NCBI RefSeq assembly: GCF_001194135.2
Contig: NC_068985.1
Span: 65,685,815 to 65,728,610, forward strand
Reading direction: 5' to 3'
Source: Octopus bimaculoides
Taxonomy: Eukaryota
Length of the DNA stretch: 42,796 bases
Shown piece after piece: positions 1-42,796 of this stretch. Both the position numbers and the translations under genes were made by a program. Below the pieces are notes generated by a model that was not told where the DNA came from, searched no databases, and saw only the letters and a program-made list of their open reading frames with translations. Position 1 is the first letter of the stretch. Each line of letters opens with the position of its first letter.

Positions 1-415
1 GCCTGGAGGACTATGATAAATAGGAGAGGCTGAGGACTGAACCTTGGTGGACCCCTACCGCTACCCGGAATTCTTCACTGTACTCGTTGCCAACCCTCAC
101 CTTACTGACAACATCTCTGTACATGGCTTGTACAGCTCTCAGTAACCATTCTTCTATCCCTAGTTTCCTCATTGACCACCAGATAAGGGATCGGGGGACC
201 CTGTCAAAGGCTTTCTCCATGTCAACGAAAGCCAGGTACAGAGGTTTATCTTTAGCTAGGTATTTCTCCTGCAGCTGTCTTACCAGAAATATAGCATCAG
301 TGGTGCTTTTCCTTGGCACGAACCCAAACTGCATCTCATCTAAACTGATTATCTCCCTAATTAGTTGGGCTATGACCCTCTCCGTGACTTTCATTACCTG
401 ATCTAACAATTTCAC
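1..415 (-). mobile_element. RTE-clade LINE, reverse transcriptase fragment
   Basis: ORF 11..415 has the non-LTR RT motifs QFGF, STTDAIF, LAFVDMEKAFDRVPR and GVHQGSVLS. It frameshifts near the end and is truncated by the window edge. Confidence 0.9.
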
Positions 416-7029: not shown

Positions 7030-8110
7030 GTAAAGTGATTGAGAAAGTCAGCATATTTGATAGGATAATTAAGCTAAGACTAATTTTGGAAATCATGACA
7101 GCAACTTTTAAATCTGCCTATGAACAAAAGGACTGATTTTATGATGTCCTTTTGCAGAATTCCTTAACAATGAATGATAGTGACCAAATTTCCATGGCTG
7201 GTGACTTCAACGGTCATATTGAGCAGCATTCTGGTGGATTCTATGGGGAAAATGGAGGCTATGGATTTGGTTCTCAAAATGAAGAAGGAATAAGACTCAT
7301 GGATTTCTGTGATGCTATGACCAATGATCTGTGACATTAACTTCAGGAAACCAGTTAGTCACCAGATCACCTATCAGCCTGGTGGGCACACAGACTAGAT
7401 TGACTACATTATCACCAGAAAGCAGGATAGACACATACTTGTGAATGTAATGTCCTTTCTGGGTGAAGAATGTACAACCCAACGTAGGTTAGAGACAAGT
7501 CAGGCTTAGAGCTAGGACTCAGAGGTACAAGCTGGCCTGGAAAAGTATGGAAGCTAAAGGATCCATCAAACAGTCAGGAATTTAAAGAAGTCCTAACTGA
7601 ACCTTTTGATGAGAAGGAAGAAGAGCTAGAGACATTACATTGATTTGGTGGTAGAATAGTGAAATAGAAAGAAAGCCATAAAATCAAAGACCCAGGTCTC
7701 TAAGAATTAGAAGAATGGGAGTTAGTAGAGAATTATACCAGGTAGTTGCAAGAGAAGCTAGTTGACAATTATTTAGCAAGGAGAGAAGCAATAAGCAAAA
7801 GTTTTGCCTGTGTTTGGCATGAGAACAAGATCCATGAGTTGTTGATTACTAGATAGTGTATCAGAGAAAATTGAGATGTTGTTGGGGAGAAGTGTGTATA
7901 GTTGGAAATGATACACTTTTTGAAAAGAAAGAAACATTGAAGTGCTACACTGGAAGGCTACAAAATGTGGAGAATGCATGGGAGAAAGAGGGCCTTTAAA
8001 ATGTGAACCCGACAGAAGGACTAACCATTCTAGCTGACAACATTATGATAGATAAAGCAATTAAAGATGTGAAGAGGGAAAAACGCAAGTTGCAACCTGA
8101 GCTCATCAGA
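7030..8110 (+). mobile_element. RTE LINE endonuclease region, degenerate
   Basis: AGDFNGHI..GGYGFGSQNEEG..DFCDA in ORF 7152..7334, followed by IDYI-like and WKLK-like remnants. Homologous to 30500-31315. Confidence 0.85.
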
Positions 8111-8523
8111 TGGAATGAAGGATACAGCTTGACTTCACTTTCTGAAATTATCACTTTGTATCACTTTGCTAAAAGATCTGATCCCCATATTTTGAGCAAC
8201 ATCATAAAGCACCAACCCCAAAACAGATGTTCTGAATGTGGTTCTACTATCCAGACAAGTTGTTCACTTGCCTTTAATTATTGAGAAAATTACAAATGTT
8301 AAAAAAAAACAAAAAAAAACAAAGAGAAACAAAAGAGACTGTAGGAAAGTGGTTATACACCATTAGGTGTACACCGCTTCCGCACATTAAATTTCTGAAG
8401 AAACAACGGAATGCAGATTCTGAACTATCAACACAACAATGTTTATTTACAGAGGAAATAGGCAGCACTTCGCCCTTTGGTTGCTGAGACGCCGTCAATG
8501 ATGTTGAGTGGTTATTTGTCTAG

Positions 8524-8604
8524 CTCCAGAGTTGGAATGTTGGAGAGAGCTGTCTCCAGAGTTGGAATGTTGGAGAGAGCTGTCTCCAGAGTTGGAATGT
8601 TGGA
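8524..8604. repeat. 30-bp minisatellite inside the 3' LTR (at least 2.7 copies, then gap)
   Basis: Unit CTCCAGAGTTGGAATGTTGGAGAGAGCTGT. Confidence 0.95.
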
Positions 8605-9515
8605 NNNNNNNNNNNNNNNNNNNNNNNNNNNNNNNNNNNNNNNNNNNNNNNNNNNNNNNNNNNNNNNNNNNNNNNNNNNNNNNNNNNNNNNNNNNNNNNN
8701 NNNNNNNNNNNNNNNNNNNNNNNNNNNNNNNNNNNNNNNNNNNNNNNNNNNNNNNNNNNNNNNNNNNNNNNNNNNNNNNNNNNNNNNNNNNNNNNNNNNN
8801 NNNNNNNNNNNNNNNNNNNNNNNNNNNNNNNNNNNNNNNNNNNNNNNNNNNNNNNNNNNNNNNNNNNNNNNNNNNNNNNNNNNNNNNNNNNNNNNNNNNN
8901 NNNNNNNNNNNNNNNNNNNNNNNNNNNNNNNNNNNNNNNNNNNNNNNNNNNNNNNNNNNNNNNNNNNNNNNNNNNNNNNNNNNNNNNNNNNNNNNNNNNN
9001 NNNNNNNNNNNNNNNNNNNNNNNNNNNNNNNNNNNNNNNNNNNNNNNNNNNNNNNNNNNNNNNNNNNNNNNNNNNNNNNNNNNNNNNNNNNNNNNNNNNN
9101 NNNNNNNNNNNNNNNNNNNNNNNNNNNNNNNNNNNNNNNNNNNNNNNNNNNNNNNNNNNNNNNNNNNNNNNNNNNNNNNNNNNNNNNNNNNNNNNNNNNN
9201 NNNNNNNNNNNNNNNNNNNNNNNNNNNNNNNNNNNNNNNNNNNNNNNNNNNNNNNNNNNNNNNNNNNNNNNNNNNNNNNNNNNNNNNNNNNNNNNNNNNN
9301 NNNNNNNNNNNNNNNNNNNNNNNNNNNNNNNNNNNNNNNNNNNNNNNNNNNNNNNNNNNNNNNNNNNNNNNNNNNNNNNNNNNNNNNNNNNNNNNNNNNN
9401 NNNNNNNNNNNNNNNNNNNNNNNNNNNNNNNNNNNNNNNNNNNNNNNNNNNNNNNNNNNNNNNNNNNNNNNNNNNNNNNNNNNNNNNNNNNNNNNNNNNN
9501 NNNNNNNNNNNNNNN
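8605..9515. other. Assembly gap (911 N)
   Basis: Run of N. Confidence 1.
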
Positions 9516-9929
9516 CTGTGTTACCTGGTACGGAATGTTCTATAAAAGTTACACAAGGAGATTTAGAATGTTCATACGCAGGAAGTTGCGGTCAAGGAGC
9601 AGAGCTGTAGTTGAGCGTCGGATGCTGGGACCTGTGTTACCTGGTACGGAATATTCTGGCTGGTTAGTTCTGGTCTGTTGATCGTGAGTGGAAACATCCA
9701 CTCTAACAGGGTCGAGATAAAACCGTGCTTGTTGATGTTGGTTGCTTGTGTACGTGTAGAAGTCATGTTGCTGCTGGCGATGTCGGGGGTGATGCTTGTA
9801 GTTCGTAGTGGTTGTTGATGTCGTCGCTGGAAACCGGCTGGAGCTGTGTTCTGTATGTGTGTTTGCGATGGTGTATGCATTGGTAAAGATGTTGACAGTG
9901 GTGTGTGTGGTGTTTGAAAAATGGGCACG

Positions 9930-10190
9930 TCGTACACGAAAGTTGAGGGTTTGTCAAGGTACGCTTTTTCAGACGGTCGACAGACACAATCTCTGTACGA
10001 CCATTAGCGTCGACCTTGAAGAAATTCAACCCAAGACTGCGGGTTGGGCGAGGCGTGTAAGGCAGCCTTAAATTGCCTATGAAAACGCTCAACCATCCCA
10101 TTAGAAGCGCTATGGTAGCTGGTGGTGCGTATCAGGAGAGAGAAATTTGACAGGGTGTCTATTTGAGAGGTACCGTTGAGTGGCATTGCT
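9930..10190 (-). pseudogene. Gypsy integrase remnant with internal deletion
   Basis: IRTTSYHSASNGMVERFHRQFKAAL (ORF 10004..10186) is joined directly to the C-terminal FKVDANGRTEIVSVDRLK (ORF 9763..10101). Confidence 0.85.
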
Positions 10191-10698
10191 GGAAAATGCT
10201 GTCATGAATTCGGAGCTGCGAGCAAAAATGACCAAAAGATCCCATGCAAATGAAGATAAGCCAGTAACTCTTCCATTCTCCGGCCGAGAGAAACGGAGAG
10301 GTGACGAAATATGCTGAACTGGGAACAAGTAAGCATCAACAAATGTTATGTACTCACTGAAATGTAACTCTGCATTTTACTGCTATTTTCAGCAAGTAGA
10401 GGACGCTGTGTAAGAATGAATTGACGTCTCGTGAAACATGTAGGAAACTGCTCAAGAAGTTGTTAGGATGAAATAACCGTGAAGTTTTTGTGTGGAAAAC
10501 CACAAAGGTCTCAGCCGCAAAGAAATCTTTGGTTATAGGCTCTGGAAGTCATTGACAAAATGAAAAACTTTAACGTAGAAAAATTTTCTTAGCTTTTCGC
10601 TTGTGATGGATGAGAATGTAGAAGCAATCCTGAAGTTGAACGTCGCGAAACATACGAATTCAAATGGCTGTTGAAACGAGGTCTGTAGATCTTTTAGC

Positions 10699-11138
10699 TC
10701 GGGGTACTAATTGTAGTATCGATTTGTAGCTCAGATTTTCGGCTGCAGTTGTTCTTTATTCGGGGTCACCAATTGTAGGGAAGTGCCGTGTGATGACCAA
10801 GAGAAAGTCCTGCAACTGTGGATGTGAGTGATTGTGTGCATTCTCTATCTGTGACGAGCATGTTGACGGCTCGTGTAGTATTGTCGGTCGGTAGCTCAGA
10901 TTTTCGGCTGCTGTTGCTCTTACTCGGGGTCACCAATTGTAGGGAAGTACCGTGTGATGACCAAGAGAAAGTCCTGCAGCTGTGGAATAAGCTGATGCGA
11001 GTGAATGTGTGCATTCTCTGGTGGTATTATTGGTCAGTAGATCAGAATCCTCAGCCGCAGTTGTTCTTTATTCGGGGTCACCAATTGTAGAAATTCTCCG
11101 GGCTGCGTTTGTTCTTGAGTCGGGGTCACCAATTGTAG
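10699..11138 (-). repeat. Array of five LTR-end/PBS(tRNA-Trp) junction motifs
   Basis: TCGGGGTCACCAATTGTAG exact at 10760, 10924, 11072 and 11120; degenerate at 10699. The PBS part is complementary to the conserved eukaryotic tRNA-Trp 3' end (...GTCGGGGTCA-CCA). Confidence 0.9.
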
Positions 11139-11577
11139 GAAAGTGGTTATACACCATTAGGTGTACACATTAAATTTCTGAAGAAACAACGGAACGCAGA
11201 TTCTGAACTATCAACACAACAATATTTATTTACAGAGGAAATAGGCAGCACTTCGCCCTTTGGTTGCTGAGACGCCGTCAATGATGTTGAGTGGTTATTT
11301 GTCTAGCTCCAGAGTTGGAATGTTGGAGAGAGCTGTCTCCAGAGTTGGAATGTTGGAGAGAGCTGTCTCCAGAGTTGGAATGTTGGAAAGAGACTGCTAC
11401 AACGTCTTGGCTCTTCGCCGGCTGGCGAGAAAGAGAATGAAAAACCGCGCGAAGCTTGGATATCGAATGACCACGCGTGCGCATGAGACTCTTCCTGTAT
11501 TCCCTCCGGAACCAGTCCCTACGCATGTGTGGATAAGCTTTCCGGAAATGTTGTCTGCTATTTAAGGCGTCACTACA
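11134..11577 (-). repeat. 5' LTR (444 bp)
   Basis: TG...CA termini. Matches 8340-8604 apart from about two transitions and an 11-bp indel. AATAAA on the minus strand. Confidence 0.9.
11307..11387. repeat. 30-bp minisatellite inside the 5' LTR (2.7 copies)
   Basis: Same unit as 8524-8604. Confidence 0.95.
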
Positions 11578-11898
11578 AGACAATATAGGAGTTTGGTGTT
11601 TTGAATAAAACATGATAAAATTGAGCATAAAAATAAAGTTAATGCTAAGCTTGTATTTCTAAGGAATTGATGCATTACTACATCACAGAATTTGTAACCA
11701 TTGATTCTAGTTTCGTTGGCAACTTATTTGCTAACTTCAAACCGAACAAGAGTGGGTCCCAATTTGTGTTTCTTCTTGTCATTTTTGCATGAAATACTAA
11801 ATATATGTTCATTTTCAGGCAACAGGGTGCATCACACTAATTTTACATTCATTCTTTATCTACAATTTCTTTTGCAATGATTTTAGAAAGATTGCACA

Positions 11899-20879: not shown

Positions 20880-21115
20880 TAAATTAATTGATACAGTTAT
20901 AATATTTAGAGAAAAATTTTTTCAAAATGTTCATTTTGGAAATTACTTTTGGAAATAGTTATAATTACTTTGAGAAATATTTTTTTCAAAATGTTAGGAT
21001 TAAGAAAAAACTTTTTAGAGAGTAGTTAGAGACAGATTTTTTTCAGAAAGTTAGCATTAAGAAAGAAACTTTTTTAGGGATTAGAATTAGTATTTTTTAA
21101 GGTAATAATAAAATT
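20880..21115. repeat. AT-rich degenerate tandem repeat, continued at 23280-23435
   Basis: Recurring GTTATAATATTTAGAG..TTTTTTCAAAATGTTAGGATTAAGAAA..ACTTTTTAGA units on both sides of the LTR pair. Confidence 0.75.
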
Positions 21116-21124
21116 AGTAGTCAG

Positions 21125-23278
21125 TGTAGTGACCATGCGACCAGGAGAGGTGACAAAGAATGGCTCCTTTAGCACCTCGCATGGTCGATACAAATAAAAA
21201 ACACGAAAAGAGGATAAATGAGTATGAGTGCCAAAAGGAAAGAGAGACTCAATTGTTAGAAGGTTTAAGAGAAGGTTTTATTGATATGTCAACTTGTGTG
21301 TATGAGTGCGACATATAAACACAATAATAGACAGGCTGTCATGTAAACAAAGTGTATGTGTACAAACATAGATGTATGTGTGTGAGAGAAATACAAAGCA
21401 TAGAAAAGAGTCTATAAGGACGTTAGAAGAAAGTCCAGACACAAGTATGGTAAATACCAGTTTGTAGTCAAGTTACACAGTAGTTGAAGTGCTGTAACAA
21501 GAAGTTGTGGTGGCAAGGCAGAGCCGGGAAGAAGGCACATGTCATGAGAAGTTGAGGCTTCAATGCTGCGGCCGGTTACTTGATACAGGAGGTCTCGCAG
21601 GTTGTACTCGCTGTTAACCATGGTGAAGTAATTCACAAACAGTGAGGTGATAGAACCTGTGGTGGTGTGTATGTAGAGACGTTGGTGTAGTCAAGAAGAT
21701 GATGGTGGCGACGAAGATGGAGTGTCCTGAATGCTGAACGAAGTGTTGAATTTCCATGAAGCTGCTGTCGTGTCGTCGCTGGAACTGGCTGTGTGCTCTG
21801 TGGTCAGCGGCTAGACCTCAGAAGGTCTGAAGCAGACTGACAAACTGTGACGGTGAAAAGCTAGCTATTTATACCATACCGTTGGCTCAACTGAGGTTCA
21901 GAAAAGGCTGTCTCATGCGACCTTATCTGAAGGCTGCGACTGGTTGGGTTGCACCCTGGCGCAAAATAGAACAGGAGACAAAATGCGCCAATACCAACCA
22001 ATCAGAGGGGTGGACACAACATGGTCCAAAAGAGCAGCCAAAGGCTAGCTGTTATCCACTACGTTTGCACTCGTGTATATATAACAGAGAGAGAGAAGTA
22101 CGCTACAGAGCCCCTCACCAGTCATTTTGTGTAAGACAAAATAGATAATAAAGGATGAAATAACTGTAACGAAAAGGAGAAAGAGCGGTTAGTCATGAAG
22201 CTGGTACTGGGTCACTATTTTGTAAAAGTCCGTACGAACGTCGGGCTGCATGTTGGAATCACGTCGGGCACAACATGTGATCACATTGGGGTCACCAGTT
22301 TGTAACGACCGTGCGACGGTGACGAGGAATAGCTCCTTTAGCGCATCGCATGGTCGGTCCCAAAAAGGAAAAGAGAGACACAACCGGTAGAAGGTTTTAT
22401 TGACATGTCGACTTGTATGTCTGTGTGTGTGAGTGCGACATGATAAACACAATAATAGACAGGCCGTCATGTAAACAAAGTGTATGTGTATGCAAACTTG
22501 GATGTATGTGTGTGCAAGAAATACAGAGCATAGAAAAGAGTCTATAAGGACGTTGAGAGAAAGTCCAGACACAAGGATGGTAAATACCAGTTCGTATTCA
22601 AGGTACACAGTGGTTGAAGTGCTGTATCAAGAAGTTGTGGCGGCAAGCCAGAGCCGAGAAAAGATACTGTCGCATGAGAAGTTGTGGCTTCGATGCTGCG
22701 GCTGATTACTTGGTACAGGAGGTCTCGCAGGTTGTATTCGCTATTAACCATGGTGAAGCAATTCACAAACAGTGTTGAGAGAACCTATGTGGCTGCTGTT
22801 GGTGGTGTGTACGTAGAGAAGTTGGTGGTGTGTACATAGAGAAGTTGGTGTTGATGCTAAGAAGCTGACAGTGGCGATGAAGATGGAGTTTGTAGTAAGC
22901 AGTTGAACGAAGTGTTGACAAGTCTCCATGTGCTGTGCTGTCGTTGCTGGAACTGGCTTTGTGCTCTGTGGCCAGTGGCTAGACCTCAGAAGGTCTGAAG
23001 CAGACTGGCAACCAGGACGGTGAAAAGCTAGCTGTTTATAAGATACTATCAGCTCAAGCAGGGGTTCAGAAAGACTGTCCCACCCGACCTCATCTGAAGG
23101 CTCCGATTGGTTGGGTTGCACCCTGGCGCGAAATAAAACAGGAAACAAAAATGCGCCAATACCAACCAATCAGAGGGGTGGACACAGCAGGGTCCAAAAG
23201 TCTGGCCGAAGGCTAGCTGTTAACCACTACATCATCCGCACTCGTGTATATATAACAGAGAGAGAGAAGTATGCTACA
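21125..23278 (-). mobile_element. Coding-free LTR element: two ~980-bp LTRs around a 193-bp core
   Basis: LTRs 21125-22107 (TGTAGT..GCTACA) and 22301-23278 (TGTAAC..GCTACA). Minus-strand PBS at 22280-22297 matches tRNA-Trp in 16 of 18 positions. PPT-like TGGTGAGGGGCTC at 22108-22120. No TSD. Confidence 0.85.
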
Positions 23279-24191
23279 ATAATTATAATATTTAGAGGAA
23301 TATTTTTTCCAAATGTTAGGATTAAGAAAAATAACTTTTTAGAAAGTAGTGTTATGGTTTACAGTTATAATATTTAGAGACAGATTTTTTTCAAAATGTT
23401 AGGATTATGAAAGAAACTTTTTTAGAGAGTAGAATGGCACTAACCTTTGGGAGGAAATTCCACAAATTGTGTGTAAACTTTCTCAAAGTTATAAAGCAAG
23501 TGTTATGGTAGAAGATATAGATGTTTAATTTTGGTGTGAGGTTCCAGGACAGTGGAGATAGATAAATAGATGGATAGACAGATAGATAGGTAGAGAGAGG
23601 GAGGGGGAGGGATTTCTTTTCAATTTGGAATTTTTTTACCATTTATTTATTTATTTAGTAGTCCCCCCCTCCCCTGTTGTATAGCTACTGGTATGAGACA
23701 TGAGTTCAAGGACGGTGACCTTTTAGGATGGGGAAAATAATGAAAAAAGGATGGGGTACAGTCATCATTAAAAGCATTTTTTTCCCCTTAAAGTGCCAAG
23801 CAAAAACTAAAACAAAAACAATAGTTTTCAGTATGCTGGTCAGTATGTTGGCCACAGGAATTTCTGTCAAATAGACATAGTTTAACAAAGTTGTATATCA
23901 TCTCACTCTTTCTCTCACATACCCACTCTTTCTCACTCTCTTATTGTTACTCCCAGTACCACCATCAACACTACTACTTTTAATAAAACACCATCAACTC
24001 TCCCTAAATTTCTTTTGTCTCTCTTTCTCTCTCTCTCTCTGTCTGTCTTCGCCACTGCCCTCACTGTCTCTATGCCTACTATTACTCTCACCCCGTCATG
24101 AGGGATAGTAGGAGTGTCATTGAACAGTGAGAGAGGGGATCAAAGTATGACACACTGACACACAGAAATTAGTTTTTATATTAGATGATAA

Positions 24192-27989: not shown

Positions 27990-29340
27990 ATTGCATATGC
28001 TCCTCAACTGGGACTGACAAATGAACAAAAGGACTGATTTTATCTGTCAGATTACCTTGAAGACAATTGGCAGTAACCTGATTATTGTGGCTGTTGACTT
28101 CAATGGACATGTTGGACAGCAACCTGATAAATTTCATGGTGTATATGGAGGCTATGGCTTTTGTCTTAGAAATATGAAGGGAAGAAGGCCTTTGGAATTC
28201 TGTGATGCTAATGACTAACTTCATCACTCTGGTGGGCACACTAGTCAGATAGACTGCATTCTCACCAGAAAACAGGTTAGACAGATATTTGTAAATGCAA
28301 ACATGAAAGACAACTGGAAATTCTTGTGGAGCATCCTACTGAGGGCTACAGACCAAATTTGTGGCTGGTGCAAAGTTCCAGTTAGACCAAGTGTCATGTG
28401 GTAGTGGATCAGTGAAGTAGAGAGAGAGAGAGTCAGCCATCCAGCCATAAAAGCAAAGAGCCAGGATTGGAAGAAAAGGACTAACAGAGAATTATACCAG
28501 ATAGTTACAAGAGAAGCTAGTTGATGGGTATGTTTAGCAAGTGGAGAAGCTGAAATGAGGATGCATGAAGTGTTCTAGATTGTAAGGCAGTGTATTAGAG
28601 AAAATTGAGATAGTGTGAGTGAGAAGTTTGTGCAGTTGGATAATGGTACACTTAGTGAAGCTGAAAATAAAGAGGCACAGAAGTGCTACAACAGAAGGCT
28701 ATTATATGTGGAAAATGCATGGGAGAAAGGTCGTCCTCCCAATATAGGCTTAACAGCATTATGATAGATAAAGCAGTGAAAACCTTTGATCTATCAGGAA
28801 TTACTTCTGAGATACTTAAAATATCTGGTGGAATAAGGTACAAACAAGTTACCAATGTAGTTAGTAAGGTTATACAGGAAGGTACCAAACCCAGCAACTG
28901 GTGTTGCAGCATTATAGTGAATTGTTTCAGCGTAAAGAAGATGTTTTAGATAGATGTTTTGGAGCAATAAATGGTAAGAATACAAGGGAAATAGATTTTC
29001 TGGAATGCCTAGGAGGTTCCCTAGAAGTAGAAATGTAGAAATGTTTCTCTTGTTTAAGTTACCTAATTAGGAGTGTAGGAGGATATTTTAAAAGTATACA
29101 GTGTATTTGAAGTAAATTAGACATTGTTTTCAAGAATAGCTTGATGTATTGGCAAACAATCAATGATGTTGGAGAGCATAAAGGATAGTTGAGAAAAAGT
29201 TGATTGACATGGTGGACTGAAAGCCATCTGTATCTTGATGATTTGCATTGGATATCAAAATGCTTGACATCACAACTGGTGCTCAGTGCTCTGTGAACAC
29301 TGTAAAGGCTGTAAGATGTGACAGGAATATCACCAAGTTC
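27990..29340 (+). mobile_element. Degenerate, internally deleted RTE LINE
   Basis: AVDFNGHVGQ..GVYGGYGF..LEFCDAN (ORF 28021..28218) plus RT-start and C-terminal remnants. Confidence 0.8.
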
Positions 29341-30499: not shown

Positions 30500-31385
30500 A
30501 TTAGATTAGTCCTTCATCATGGGTTAGCAACCATTATCTCAGCCTATGCCCCTCAGCCGGGGCTACCCAATGGACAGAAAGACCGATTTTATGACACCCT
30601 CTTGCAGACTACCTCATCGTCGAATGACAGGGACCTTCTCTTTGTGGCTGGTGACTTCAATGGACATGTTGGACAACATTCAGGGGGCTTCCATGGCGTA
30701 CATGGAGGCTATGGTTTTGGTTCCCGCAATGAAGAGGGAACCAGGCTGCTGGAGTTCTGTGATGCAAATGATCTTATGGTTTGCAATACTAACTTCAGGA
30801 AACTTGCCAGTCACCTACCGTTCTGGCAGAGACACTAGCCAAATTGACTACATCCTCGCCAGAAAAAGGGAAGGAGAACTGCTTATAAATGCCAAAACCT
30901 TCCCAGGCGAAGAATGTACCCCACAACATAGACTAGTAGTTAGTGACTTCAGGATCAGGGCCAAGTGGTTGCCCAGAAGACGACCAGCATGGAGGAGAAG
31001 GGTCTGGAAGCTCAAAGATCCTGCGAATGGACAGAGATTTAGAGACTTATTACTCGAAGCCTTTGACGAAATAGAAGGGGATATAGCTTCACACGATGTA
31101 GAAGACAACCGGAGGTTTCTACAGGACAACCTGCTGAGGGCCACTGATCAGATCTGTGGATGGTGCAAAGTCCCCTCTCGACCCAAAATAACATGGTGGT
31201 GGAACAATGTTGTTGACAGGGCTATTAGACAAAAGAAACAGGCCTGGAAGGACTGGAAGCATGATGGTAGCAGGGAATCGTATCAGACTGCCAGAAGGGA
31301 AGCTAGGCATCTGGCAGTAGATAATCTGCTTATCGAAATTCCATCTGACCCATGAATGCATGGAAAAATGGACATTAAATGATGT
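30500..31385 (+). mobile_element. RTE LINE endonuclease fragment followed by an RTE-type 3' tail
   Basis: ISAYAPQ, AGDFNGHVG, NEEGTRLLEFC, SQIDYIL and RRRVWKLKD motifs (ORFs 30602..30838 and 30546..31355). Tail-like CCCATG..GCATGGAAAAATGGACATTAAATGATG at ~31355-31385. Confidence 0.9.
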
Positions 31386-41390: not shown

Positions 41391-41554
41391 TCATTAAAAG
41401 ACATATATGATGTTATTTTTTAGGCTGACAATACTCTTTGAAACTTTGTTTAAACAATAATAATTATATATTTATGTATTGGATTGTCCAGTTCAAAGAT
41501 GTTAAATACTTGTTATGCATTGGAAGAAATGTGGCAACTTGCATAATTTTATCT

Positions 41555-42540
41555 TTCTCACTCACTCACACACTCACTCACTCATTCATTCATTCATTCA
41601 TTTACACACACACTCACTCACTCACTCACTCATTCATTCATTCATTCATTCATTCATTTACACACTCACTCACTCACTCACTCACTCACTCACTCACTCA
41701 CTCATTCATTCATTCATTCATTTACACACTCACTCACTCACTCATTCATTCATTCGTATACTTATTCACTTTCTCATAAACATTTTCATTTACTCAGTTT
41801 CTCACTCACACACTAAGTTATTTACATAGCCTTTCAATCAATGATTGTCTCTCTCACTGACTCACTCATGCACAAGCTCACTCACTCATCTATACACCCT
41901 CTCACTCATTTACTCACTTCTACATTCATTCACATTATTATTCATTTAGGAACTTACTGATTTATTTACTCATTTACTTGCTTACTTAACTACTTATGTT
42001 CTCCTTCAAGCACTCACTCATCACTCCCTCATTTACTCTGTCAGTCACTCATTAAGATAGTCAATCTTATTAACTCATATACTCACTCATTCCCTGTTTC
42101 ACTCACTCAATCATTTGCATGTTCATTTACACAGTTAGTCACTCACTCTTTCAATCAAACAATCATGTACTCTCATTCAAGCCCACTGAGTAACTGACAA
42201 TGACTGACACACATTACTTACATACTCACTTACTGACTTACTATGCATTAAGTCACTCACTCACTCACTCATTCACCTATTCAGTCTTTCAATTAATCAG
42301 TTACTCATTGACCCACTCATTCACACACTTAATTGCTTATTGATTACTGGGTTATTCTCTGAATCAGTTAATTACAAACACATTGTTTTGCCTACTTGTT
42401 TAGTTGCTCACTCAATCGTTCACTCAATTAACTCATATACAAAATTAATTGCTCACTAGTTTACTTACTCCCTAATTTAATTACTTAATTATTTGCTTGG
42501 TCATTGAGTCACACACATATTCTCTCATTCATTTACTTAC
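41555..42540. repeat. Compound (TCAC)n/(TCAT)n microsatellite, pure at left and decayed at right
   Basis: Direct reading. The THS/FIHS-rich ORFs at 41438 and 41515 are artefacts of this repeat. Confidence 0.9.
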
Positions 42541-42541
42541 T

Positions 42542-42796
42542 TGATCGACTACATCCTCGCCAGAAATAGGGAAAGAGGGCGGCTTATAAATGCCAAAACC
42601 TACCCTGGCGAAGAATGTACCCCACAACATAGATTAGTAGTTAGCGACTTTGGGATCAAGGCAAAATGGGTGCCCAGAATTAGACAGGCTTGGAGAAGAA
42701 GGGTGTGGAAGCTTAAAGACCCTGCAAACGGACAGAGACTTAGAGACAAGTTACTTGAAGCATTTAACGAAATAGAAGGGGATATAGCATCATACA
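42542..42796 (+). mobile_element. RTE LINE endonuclease fragment, runs off the window
   Basis: IDYILARN..FPGEEC-like..QHRLVVSDF..RRRVWKLKDPANG. Close homologue of 30840-31095. Confidence 0.9.

Follow-up and report, generated by a model that had tools for sequence, protein, structure and literature searches.

The window, by which we mean the whole 42,796-nucleotide stretch of the Octopus bimaculoides genome analysed here, contains a 3.2-kb LTR element on the minus strand (11577-8340) whose leader holds a stack of primer-binding sites (PBSs). The element has the traits of an LTR retrotransposon: direct LTRs with TG...CA ends (TGTAG...CTACA), a 4-bp target-site duplication (TSD), GTCT, on both sides, and a 12-13-nt complement of tRNA-Trp located 2 nt past the LTR. 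Its parts, by position in the window, are:

11578-11581, unstranded: upstream copy of the TSD, GTCT in the minus-strand reading (direct read)
11134-11577, minus strand: 5' LTR, 444 nt, TGTAG...CTACA (aligned with the 3' LTR)
11307-11392, minus strand: tandem repeat of 30 nt x 2.9 within the 5' LTR (Tandem Repeats Finder)
10334-10698, minus strand: rest of the leader beyond the array, with no ORF and no gag similarity to relatives
9960-10333, minus strand: frameshifted remnant of an integrase that has lost internal parts (…SASNGMVERFHRQFKAAL…, …GRTEIVSVDRLKK)
8605-9514, unstranded: assembly gap of 910 N, covering the polypurine tract site and the 5' part of the 3' LTR
8340-8604, minus strand: visible 3' LTR, ending ...ACTTTCCTACA, with no PBS units attached
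8336-8339, unstranded: downstream copy of the TSD, GTCT (direct read)

The LTRs are 99% identical over the 254 nt in which both are visible, with 252 matches, 2 mismatches (0.8%), and one 11-nt indel. This indel, GTGCGGAAGCG (approximately 8376-8386, with GTG repeats flanking), is present in the U5 of the 3' LTR and missing from the 5' LTR near 11165; because the two U5 copies should match at integration, it reflects either later slippage or an assembly difference. Both LTRs also harbor a 30-nt unit repeated 2.7-2.9 times (11307-11392; 8524-8604) in their upstream part, which is probably U3. At the edge of the gap, a 26-nt sequence recurs 116 nt away (9516-9541 and 9632-9657), suggesting imperfect local assembly.

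Similarity to gag, PR, or RT is absent from the visible internal region, where the longest minus-strand ORF does not exceed 121 aa. Over 38 aa, the integrase remnant shares 87% identity with P0014, a "K02A2.6-like" RT-RNaseH-IN protein from Octopus sinensis; its match to the rve_3 profile (E 0.0027) falls below the cut-off. P0014 features the domain order RVT_1, RT_RNaseH_2, Integrase_H2C2, rve, from which the octopus element retains the integrase remnant only. The likeness to P0014 suggests an element of the Ty3/Gypsy type. It is non-autonomous (LARD/TRIM-like), and its true length is uncertain given the 910-N gap.

Elsewhere, the window features LINE-type fragments at 11-415 (minus strand), 30546-31355 (plus strand), and 7117-7988 / 28010-28729 / 30567-30765, 30843-31094 / 42544-42795. 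They include one ORF with RVT_1 and another that shares 85% identity with the O. bimaculoides 'craniofacial development protein 2-like', and dispersed repeat copies among them are 64-85% identical. A long low-complexity array with a period of 8-12 nt occupies 41501-41900.

The stack itself is built on a 19-nt core, CTACAATTGGTGACCCCGA, that occurs four times without change on the minus strand (11138-11120, 11090-11072, 10942-10924, and 10778-10760). Its chance expectation is nil, with 0 matches in 100 shuffles even when 3 mismatches are allowed. A fifth and decayed core, CTACAATTAGTACCCCGA, lies at 10716-10699 and differs by one substitution and one deletion. Each core consists of CTACA (the LTR end), a 2-nt spacer AT, and a 12-nt tRNA-Trp PBS, TGGTGACCCCGA. 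The CTACA of each module corresponds to the last 5 nt of U5 and carries the integrase CA end, and the AT that separates it from the PBS is the dinucleotide that integrase would trim in 3' processing. TGGTGACCCCGA is complementary to the final 12 nt at the 3' end of tRNA-Trp, CCA included, when compared with a human tRNA-Trp template oligo (PMC6379413) and with the ALV/EAV PBS primer (PMC5029493). Octopus tRNA-Trp presumably has the same 3' end, a supposition supported by the 18-nt PBS of a second LTR element in the window (see below). From the LTR-proximal core outward, the spacers between successive cores measure 29, 129, 145, and 43 nt, and the array is laid out as follows:

11120-11138, minus strand: module 1 core, CTACA + AT + PBS1 (TGGTGACCCCGA), exact match
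11091-11119, minus strand: Y1, post-PBS segment of 29 nt, ending at the start of the CTAC microhomology of the next core
11072-11090, minus strand: module 2 core, exact
10943-11071, minus strand: spacer 2, comprising Y2 (contains TTCTGATCT) and tail T2 of approximately 95 nt, which ends ACTTCC ahead of CTACA
10924-10942, minus strand: module 3 core, exact
10779-10923, minus strand: spacer 3, comprising Y3 and tail T3 of approximately 110 nt
10760-10778, minus strand: module 4 core, exact
10717-10759, minus strand: Y4, a chimera
10699-10716, minus strand: module 5 core, decayed (CTACAATTAGTACCCCGA)

A preliminary description of this DNA had already recognized four exact cores and one decayed core, and both their positions and the spacer lengths hold. 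Its reading of the core as an LTR terminus, a 2-nt spacer, and a tRNA-Trp PBS is upheld by the comparison with tRNA-Trp, and the LTR pair and TSD bear out its placement of the array in the leader of a minus-strand LTR retrotransposon. We likewise recover the relatedness that it reported among the post-PBS segments (Y, approximately 30-45 nt), which share 65-90% identity over their first 20 nt. The term "repeat-spacer array," however, should be replaced, as the units vary in length and together form a degenerate tandem repeat. The description of the long spacers is retained in part: they do share the end ACTTCCCTACA behind diverged 5' parts, which also differ by indels, but they are not unrelated; the last 48 nt of T2 and T3 are 96% identical. 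The tail (approximately 95-110 nt) is extra in units 2 and 3 only and ends in ACTTCC before the next CTACA.

Comparison of the units reveals an uneven distribution of identity. Among the four exact units, identity is complete across the 19-nt core, an island whose limits coincide with CTACA + AT + the 12-nt PBS, whereas just 5 of the 75 flanking columns show no variation. The flanks on the two sides of the core also group the units differently. Upstream, PBS3 and PBS4 are the sole alike pair (97%); downstream, it is PBS2 and PBS4 that resemble each other (90%), and units 2 and 4 share a 34-nt stretch exactly. Y4 is itself a mosaic in which the first 15 nt are Y2-like and the following 21 nt match Y3 exactly. 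The discordant grouping and the chimeric Y4 together imply recombination at or near the core. CTAC marks both the end of unit 1 and the start of core 2, and Y2, Y3, and Y4 each hold a CTAC at the homologous position; the motif shared at the unit 1/core 2 junction points to a microhomology-mediated jump.

The stretch after each PBS probably continues the tRNA-Trp complement in degenerate form. Visual inspection of the Y segments shows three patches (GAACA, GCAGCC, and TCTGA.CT) that are colinear with this complement past nt 12. The segment TTCTGATCT in Y2 matches it at 9 of 9 positions at a nearly correct offset (p ~0.02). Similar continuations are found in two of the loci retrieved for comparison: GAACACTCAACC in an element of Octopus sinensis (L005) matches the complement beyond nt 12 at 11 of 12 positions (p 0.012), and a metagenomic contig (L001) is colinear with it over approximately 36 nt (p 0.065). 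Anchored tests of single Y segments against tRNA-Trp are weak (p 0.06-0.5), the reference being other than octopus tRNA-Trp, while Y1 and Y3 resemble the tRNA-derived segment of the second LTR element in the window with p 0.03 and 0.02, respectively. Rfam and tRNA scans of the array element and the fetched loci returned nothing.

The tails are more difficult to place. Their last 11 nt resemble the U5 end of the element itself (ACTTTCCTACA), and their CACGG...ACA pattern recurs at the LTR ends of the second element (p 0.04 for T2 and 0.14 for T3). They may thus be captured U5 sequence of another family, as the preliminary description supposed; the 11-nt resemblance and the faint likeness to the second element (p ~0.04-0.14) agree with such an origin, but no donor LTR was found. 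Derivation of T2 and T3 from a diverged copy of the leader downstream of the array, or from U5 of the element's own LTR, was considered and set aside because neither similarity is significant. Decayed inner sub-units of core plus Y within the long units were also rejected: CTAC-TGACC-AATAA is suggestive by eye and not significant against shuffles. With regard to conserved RNA structure, the leader as a whole scores z -1.0, and in seven relatives the native modules fold unremarkably. Only the modules of PBS3 and PBS4 stand out from shuffled sequence (z -2.4 and -2.3), and as copies of one another the two are not independent; in the predicted fold, GGTCATCA of the tail pairs with TGGTGACC of the PBS.

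The LTRs provide a clock for the array. Its units differ from one another by 10-35%, with indels, whereas the LTR pair differs at 2 of 254 sites. This far greater divergence implies that the array is older than the insertion in which it is found and passed through reverse transcription intact. It therefore appears to have been present in the RNA template rather than built at the locus after insertion. The LTRs also record where the last cycle of replication began. Under the strand-transfer scheme of retroelement replication, a start at an internal PBS would lengthen both LTRs by the units upstream of it. The 3' LTR ends ...ACTTTCCTACA at CTACA, directly abuts the TSD, and contains 0 array units; hence, the last cycle began at the LTR-proximal PBS1. 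Taken together, the LTR comparison indicates that the array was copied intact through at least one further cycle of retrotransposition that started at PBS1, and this copy does not display LTRs extended by leader units, the mark of a functional multi-PBS leader.

A second LTR element, E2, lies farther along the same strand (23278-21125). It is unrelated to the array element and older, with LTRs of approximately 980 nt (TGTAG...TTACA/CTACA) that are about 88% identical over aligned columns:

22301-23278, minus strand: E2 5' LTR
21125-22107, minus strand: E2 3' LTR

No TSD is visible around E2, and its internal region spans only about 190 nt. The start site reads TTACA-AAC-TGGTGACCCCAATGTGAT, and 16 of the 18 positions of its PBS (22297-22280) agree with the tRNA-Trp complement, both changes being CpG transitions. 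After 11 nt of other sequence, the PBS TGGTGACCCCAATGTGAT is followed by CCCGACGTGATTCCAACATGCAGCC (22268-22244), which corresponds to nt 8-32 of the tRNA-Trp complement with 21 of 25 matches, a score reached by 0 of 1000 shuffles. Farther in, ACGGACTTTTACA-AAA-TAGTGACCCAGT (22225-22206) is a decayed second module of U5 end, spacer, and PBS. Two additional TTACA motifs occur at 22169 and 22134. Tandem repeats of approximately 57-83 nt (TTTTTTCAAAATGTTAGGATTAAGAAA...) are located on both sides of E2 (20954-21087 and 23278-23435), suggesting insertion of E2 into a short satellite-like array. E2 and the array element would thus represent at least two independent events of start-module duplication and of primer-tRNA copying past the PBS within this stretch of the genome.

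Sister copies of the array family were not retrieved in protein, viral-contig, or metagenome searches. A protein search with the integrase remnant returned one spider fragment and no sister copy; an exact look-up of 20 ORFs from the array, internal region, and LTR found all of them absent; a viral-contig scan gave no match; and related-protein look-ups yielded distant relatives only. A metagenome scan recovered four unrelated contigs (L001-L004) with the exact 19-mer, each with one core, although L003 is not clearly an LTR leader despite this exact match. The closest relative retrieved is the Octopus sinensis element L005 (CM016860.1; LTRs TGTAG...TTTACA). It harbors a single PBS, which is followed by a 42-nt tandem duplication (8287-8370) whose left edge, CCCGA, falls within the PBS, the same breakpoint as that of the second tRNA-like segment in E2. 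In L002, L004, and L005, the full PBS is 12 nt long.

In three autonomous relatives (L009, L010, and L011), the PBS sits just ahead of gag. Specifically, the tRNA-Trp PBS at 6272 in L009, 6361 in L010, and 6303 in L011 lies 0-40 nt before the called gag start or overlaps it; their gag carries DUF7041, and a leader is almost absent. Octopod non-autonomous elements have leaders of hundreds of nucleotides as opposed to these near-leaderless autonomous relatives. Overall, the eight related or motif-sharing PBS sites that we fetched (L001-L005, L009, L010, and L011) have one PBS apiece, in agreement with the single PBS that the preliminary description took as the norm. Tandem duplication of a different kind is seen in predicted integrases from elsewhere (P0010, P0012, and P0013), which feature 4-6 tandem core motifs (…TTAYHP.ANG.VERFHRQLK…), i.e., intragenic duplications in other retroelement copies.

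We consider it somewhat probable that the array arose by template switching or slippage of reverse transcriptase (RT) at the junction of U5, PBS, and primer tRNA and was then inherited; the RT mechanism itself is one that we infer from the anatomy of the units. RT would read beyond the PBS. During minus-strand synthesis, it would enter the U5 of a co-packaged RNA; alternatively, during plus-strand strong-stop synthesis, it would continue into the primer tRNA. In either case, the enzyme would then re-align upstream or downstream on a short homology, of which the CTAC at the unit 1/unit 2 junction may be the visible example, and the jump would duplicate a segment comprised of U5 end, spacer, PBS, and post-PBS stretch. 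Further switches among units could generate the present mosaic, and a leader that remained viable would be propagated in trans by an autonomous relative. Of the three roles offered in the preliminary description (several priming sites, a tRNA-fragment decoy, and capture by template switching), the last appears to fit this anatomy best. Parallels are found in the duplicated module and tRNA read-through of E2 and in the L005 duplication that begins in the PBS, which hint that rearrangement of this junction is a recurrent process in octopod genomes.

Other origins for the units must be weighed against RT switching. The array might have formed after insertion, by replication slippage or unequal crossing-over at this locus, and tandem duplications are indeed common in the window; nevertheless, a late duplication would be younger than the LTR pair, and units that are 10-35% diverged, with indels and mosaicism, beside LTRs at 0.8% make this very improbable. 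An assembly artefact, in which reads from several family members were threaded through their shared PBS k-mer, is just as hard to accept. The 910-N gap inside the element, the 26-nt duplicate at its edge, and the 34-nt exact repeat of units 2 and 4 would accommodate it, but every junction of a Y segment with the next core, e.g., GGAGAATTT joined to CTACAATTGG, would have to exist in the reads, the array, itself free of N, sits 1.2 kb away from the gap, and the matching TSDs support a single insertion. An unlikely but more serious alternative is serial capture, whereby each unit is the U5-PBS-leader junction of a different co-packaged relative, added singly at the 5' side such that the unit farthest from the LTR is the oldest. 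It differs from RT switching within the leader only in the source of the units and presumes a donor LTR family with a U5 ending ...GGACTTTCTCTTGGTCATCACACGGYACTTCCCTACA. The tails do end in U5-like ACTTCCCTACA instead of the element's own ACTTTCCTACA, the CACGG...ACA terminal pattern is common to tails and E2 LTR ends (p 0.04 for T2, 0.14 for T3), decay is greatest in the most distal unit, and reshuffling of LTR and internal parts has been reported in non-autonomous LTR elements (PMC13570524). However, unit 1 has no U5 tail past approximately 5-8 nt and its junction looks like slippage on one template, T2 and T3 are such close copies that at least one duplication step took place within the array, and no donor LTR was found.

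The alternatives that assign the array a function turn on whether the internal sites work. Every exact unit keeps the CA end, the AT, and the PBS, making several priming sites a possible role, and four perfect cores beside diverged flanks could equally be read as the product of selection for several working starts. In such a multi-start leader, each internal module would be a site of initiation that raises primer capture for an element using proteins supplied in trans, and internal starts would lengthen progeny LTRs by leader units, thereby offering a way for U5 to turn over. In favour of this reading, perfect identity stops at the functional limits in four units whose flanks have diverged, 12 nt is the whole PBS length in L002, L004, and L005, the sole decayed unit is the most distal one, and the modules of PBS3 and PBS4 score z -2.4 and -2.3 against shuffled sequence in folding. 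There is also the analogy with engineered retroviral vectors containing two PBSs, which Voronin and Pathak (J Virol 2004) reportedly found to initiate at both. Even so, the only replication event that can be read used PBS1, the eight related or motif-sharing sites have a single PBS, identity of the cores could also stem from template switching driven by homology or from capture of a junction that was functional in its donors, and neither the whole leader (z -1.0) nor the native modules of relatives are unusually structured. We thus regard a functional multi-start leader as doubtful, and more doubtful still the extended form in which the stacked modules of a parasitic, non-autonomous element are selected working starts and LTRs absorb leader units, leading to rapid turnover of LTR ends and new LTR families recurrently among octopod tRNA-Trp-primed elements. 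A role as decoy or sponge for tRNA-Trp or for 3' fragments of it, which the several perfect 12-nt complements of the tRNA-Trp 3' end might suggest, seems the least likely of the three proposed roles and is scarcely credible: pairing stops at nt 12-13, the seed at the 5' end of an 18-22-nt 3' tRNA fragment would face PBS nt 13-18 and beyond, positions that vary among units and differ from the tRNA, and extra target sites would normally harm an element, not help it.

LTR retroelements are taught as having one PBS that abuts U5. The avian leukosis/sarcoma viruses and K02A2.6-like Ty3/Gypsy elements use the same primer complement (TGGTGACCCCGA...), located 1-3 nt past a U5 end in CA, but they carry one PBS of 12-18 nt in place of four intact modules and a decayed fifth, each with a CA end and AT. 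Engineered two-PBS vectors are reportedly similar in that the leader contains more than one identical PBS, and a downstream start predicts LTRs extended by the sequence between sites. The vectors are man-made, however, with two sites and no duplicated U5 ends, whereas the octopus array is natural and has five units with an integrase-type end per unit.

More than one tRNA-binding site per genome is also a feature of the bipartite PBS of yeast Ty3 and Drosophila Gypsy, in which the second site is at the 3' end of the RNA and binds a different part of the tRNA (PMC1635307). In the array, by contrast, the sites are identical copies that target one 12-nt stretch of the tRNA, and all of them lie in the 5' leader. 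Beyond bipartite PBSs, our literature search, to which the topic is ill-suited, found no natural stacks of U5-end/PBS modules.

Repeats in untranslated regions are familiar from the 5' UTR of Drosophila gypsy, ZAM, and Idefix and from the 3' UTR arrays of plant Ogre/Tat elements. Like the octopus array, they are head-to-tail, internal, non-coding, and inherited via retrotransposition; they are not known to include a U5 end and PBS. Among non-autonomous elements, tandem LTR-internal-LTR arrays are reported for Cassandra (PMC7215508), and reshuffled copies are described for sugar beet TRIMs (PMC13570524). These elements are similarly non-autonomous and structurally plastic with several PBSs per locus, but a full LTR precedes each PBS; in the array, only the last 5 to approximately 100 nt of U5 do so.

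Two further comparisons are the read-through products of primer tRNAs and the strong-stop-DNA model for tRNA-derived SINEs, which is attributed to Ohshima and Okada. The likeness is a U5 joined to more of the tRNA complement than the PBS, which is clear in E2 (nt 8-32) and probable in the Y segments of the array. The difference is that the array modules are stacked in a leader and not dispersed, and the tRNA part past nt 12 is degenerate.

In summary, the array is a real and unusual case of tandem repeats in a retrotransposon leader, known from one copy in a gapped draft assembly and partly supported by E2. Four intact start modules that survived reverse transcription would constitute a rare fossil record of RT misbehaviour at the primer-tRNA junction in vivo. 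The array also offers a natural test case for the choice of primer site, which so far has been studied only in engineered two-PBS vectors. If its internal sites do prime, such stacks would provide a simple route to the remodelling of LTR ends.
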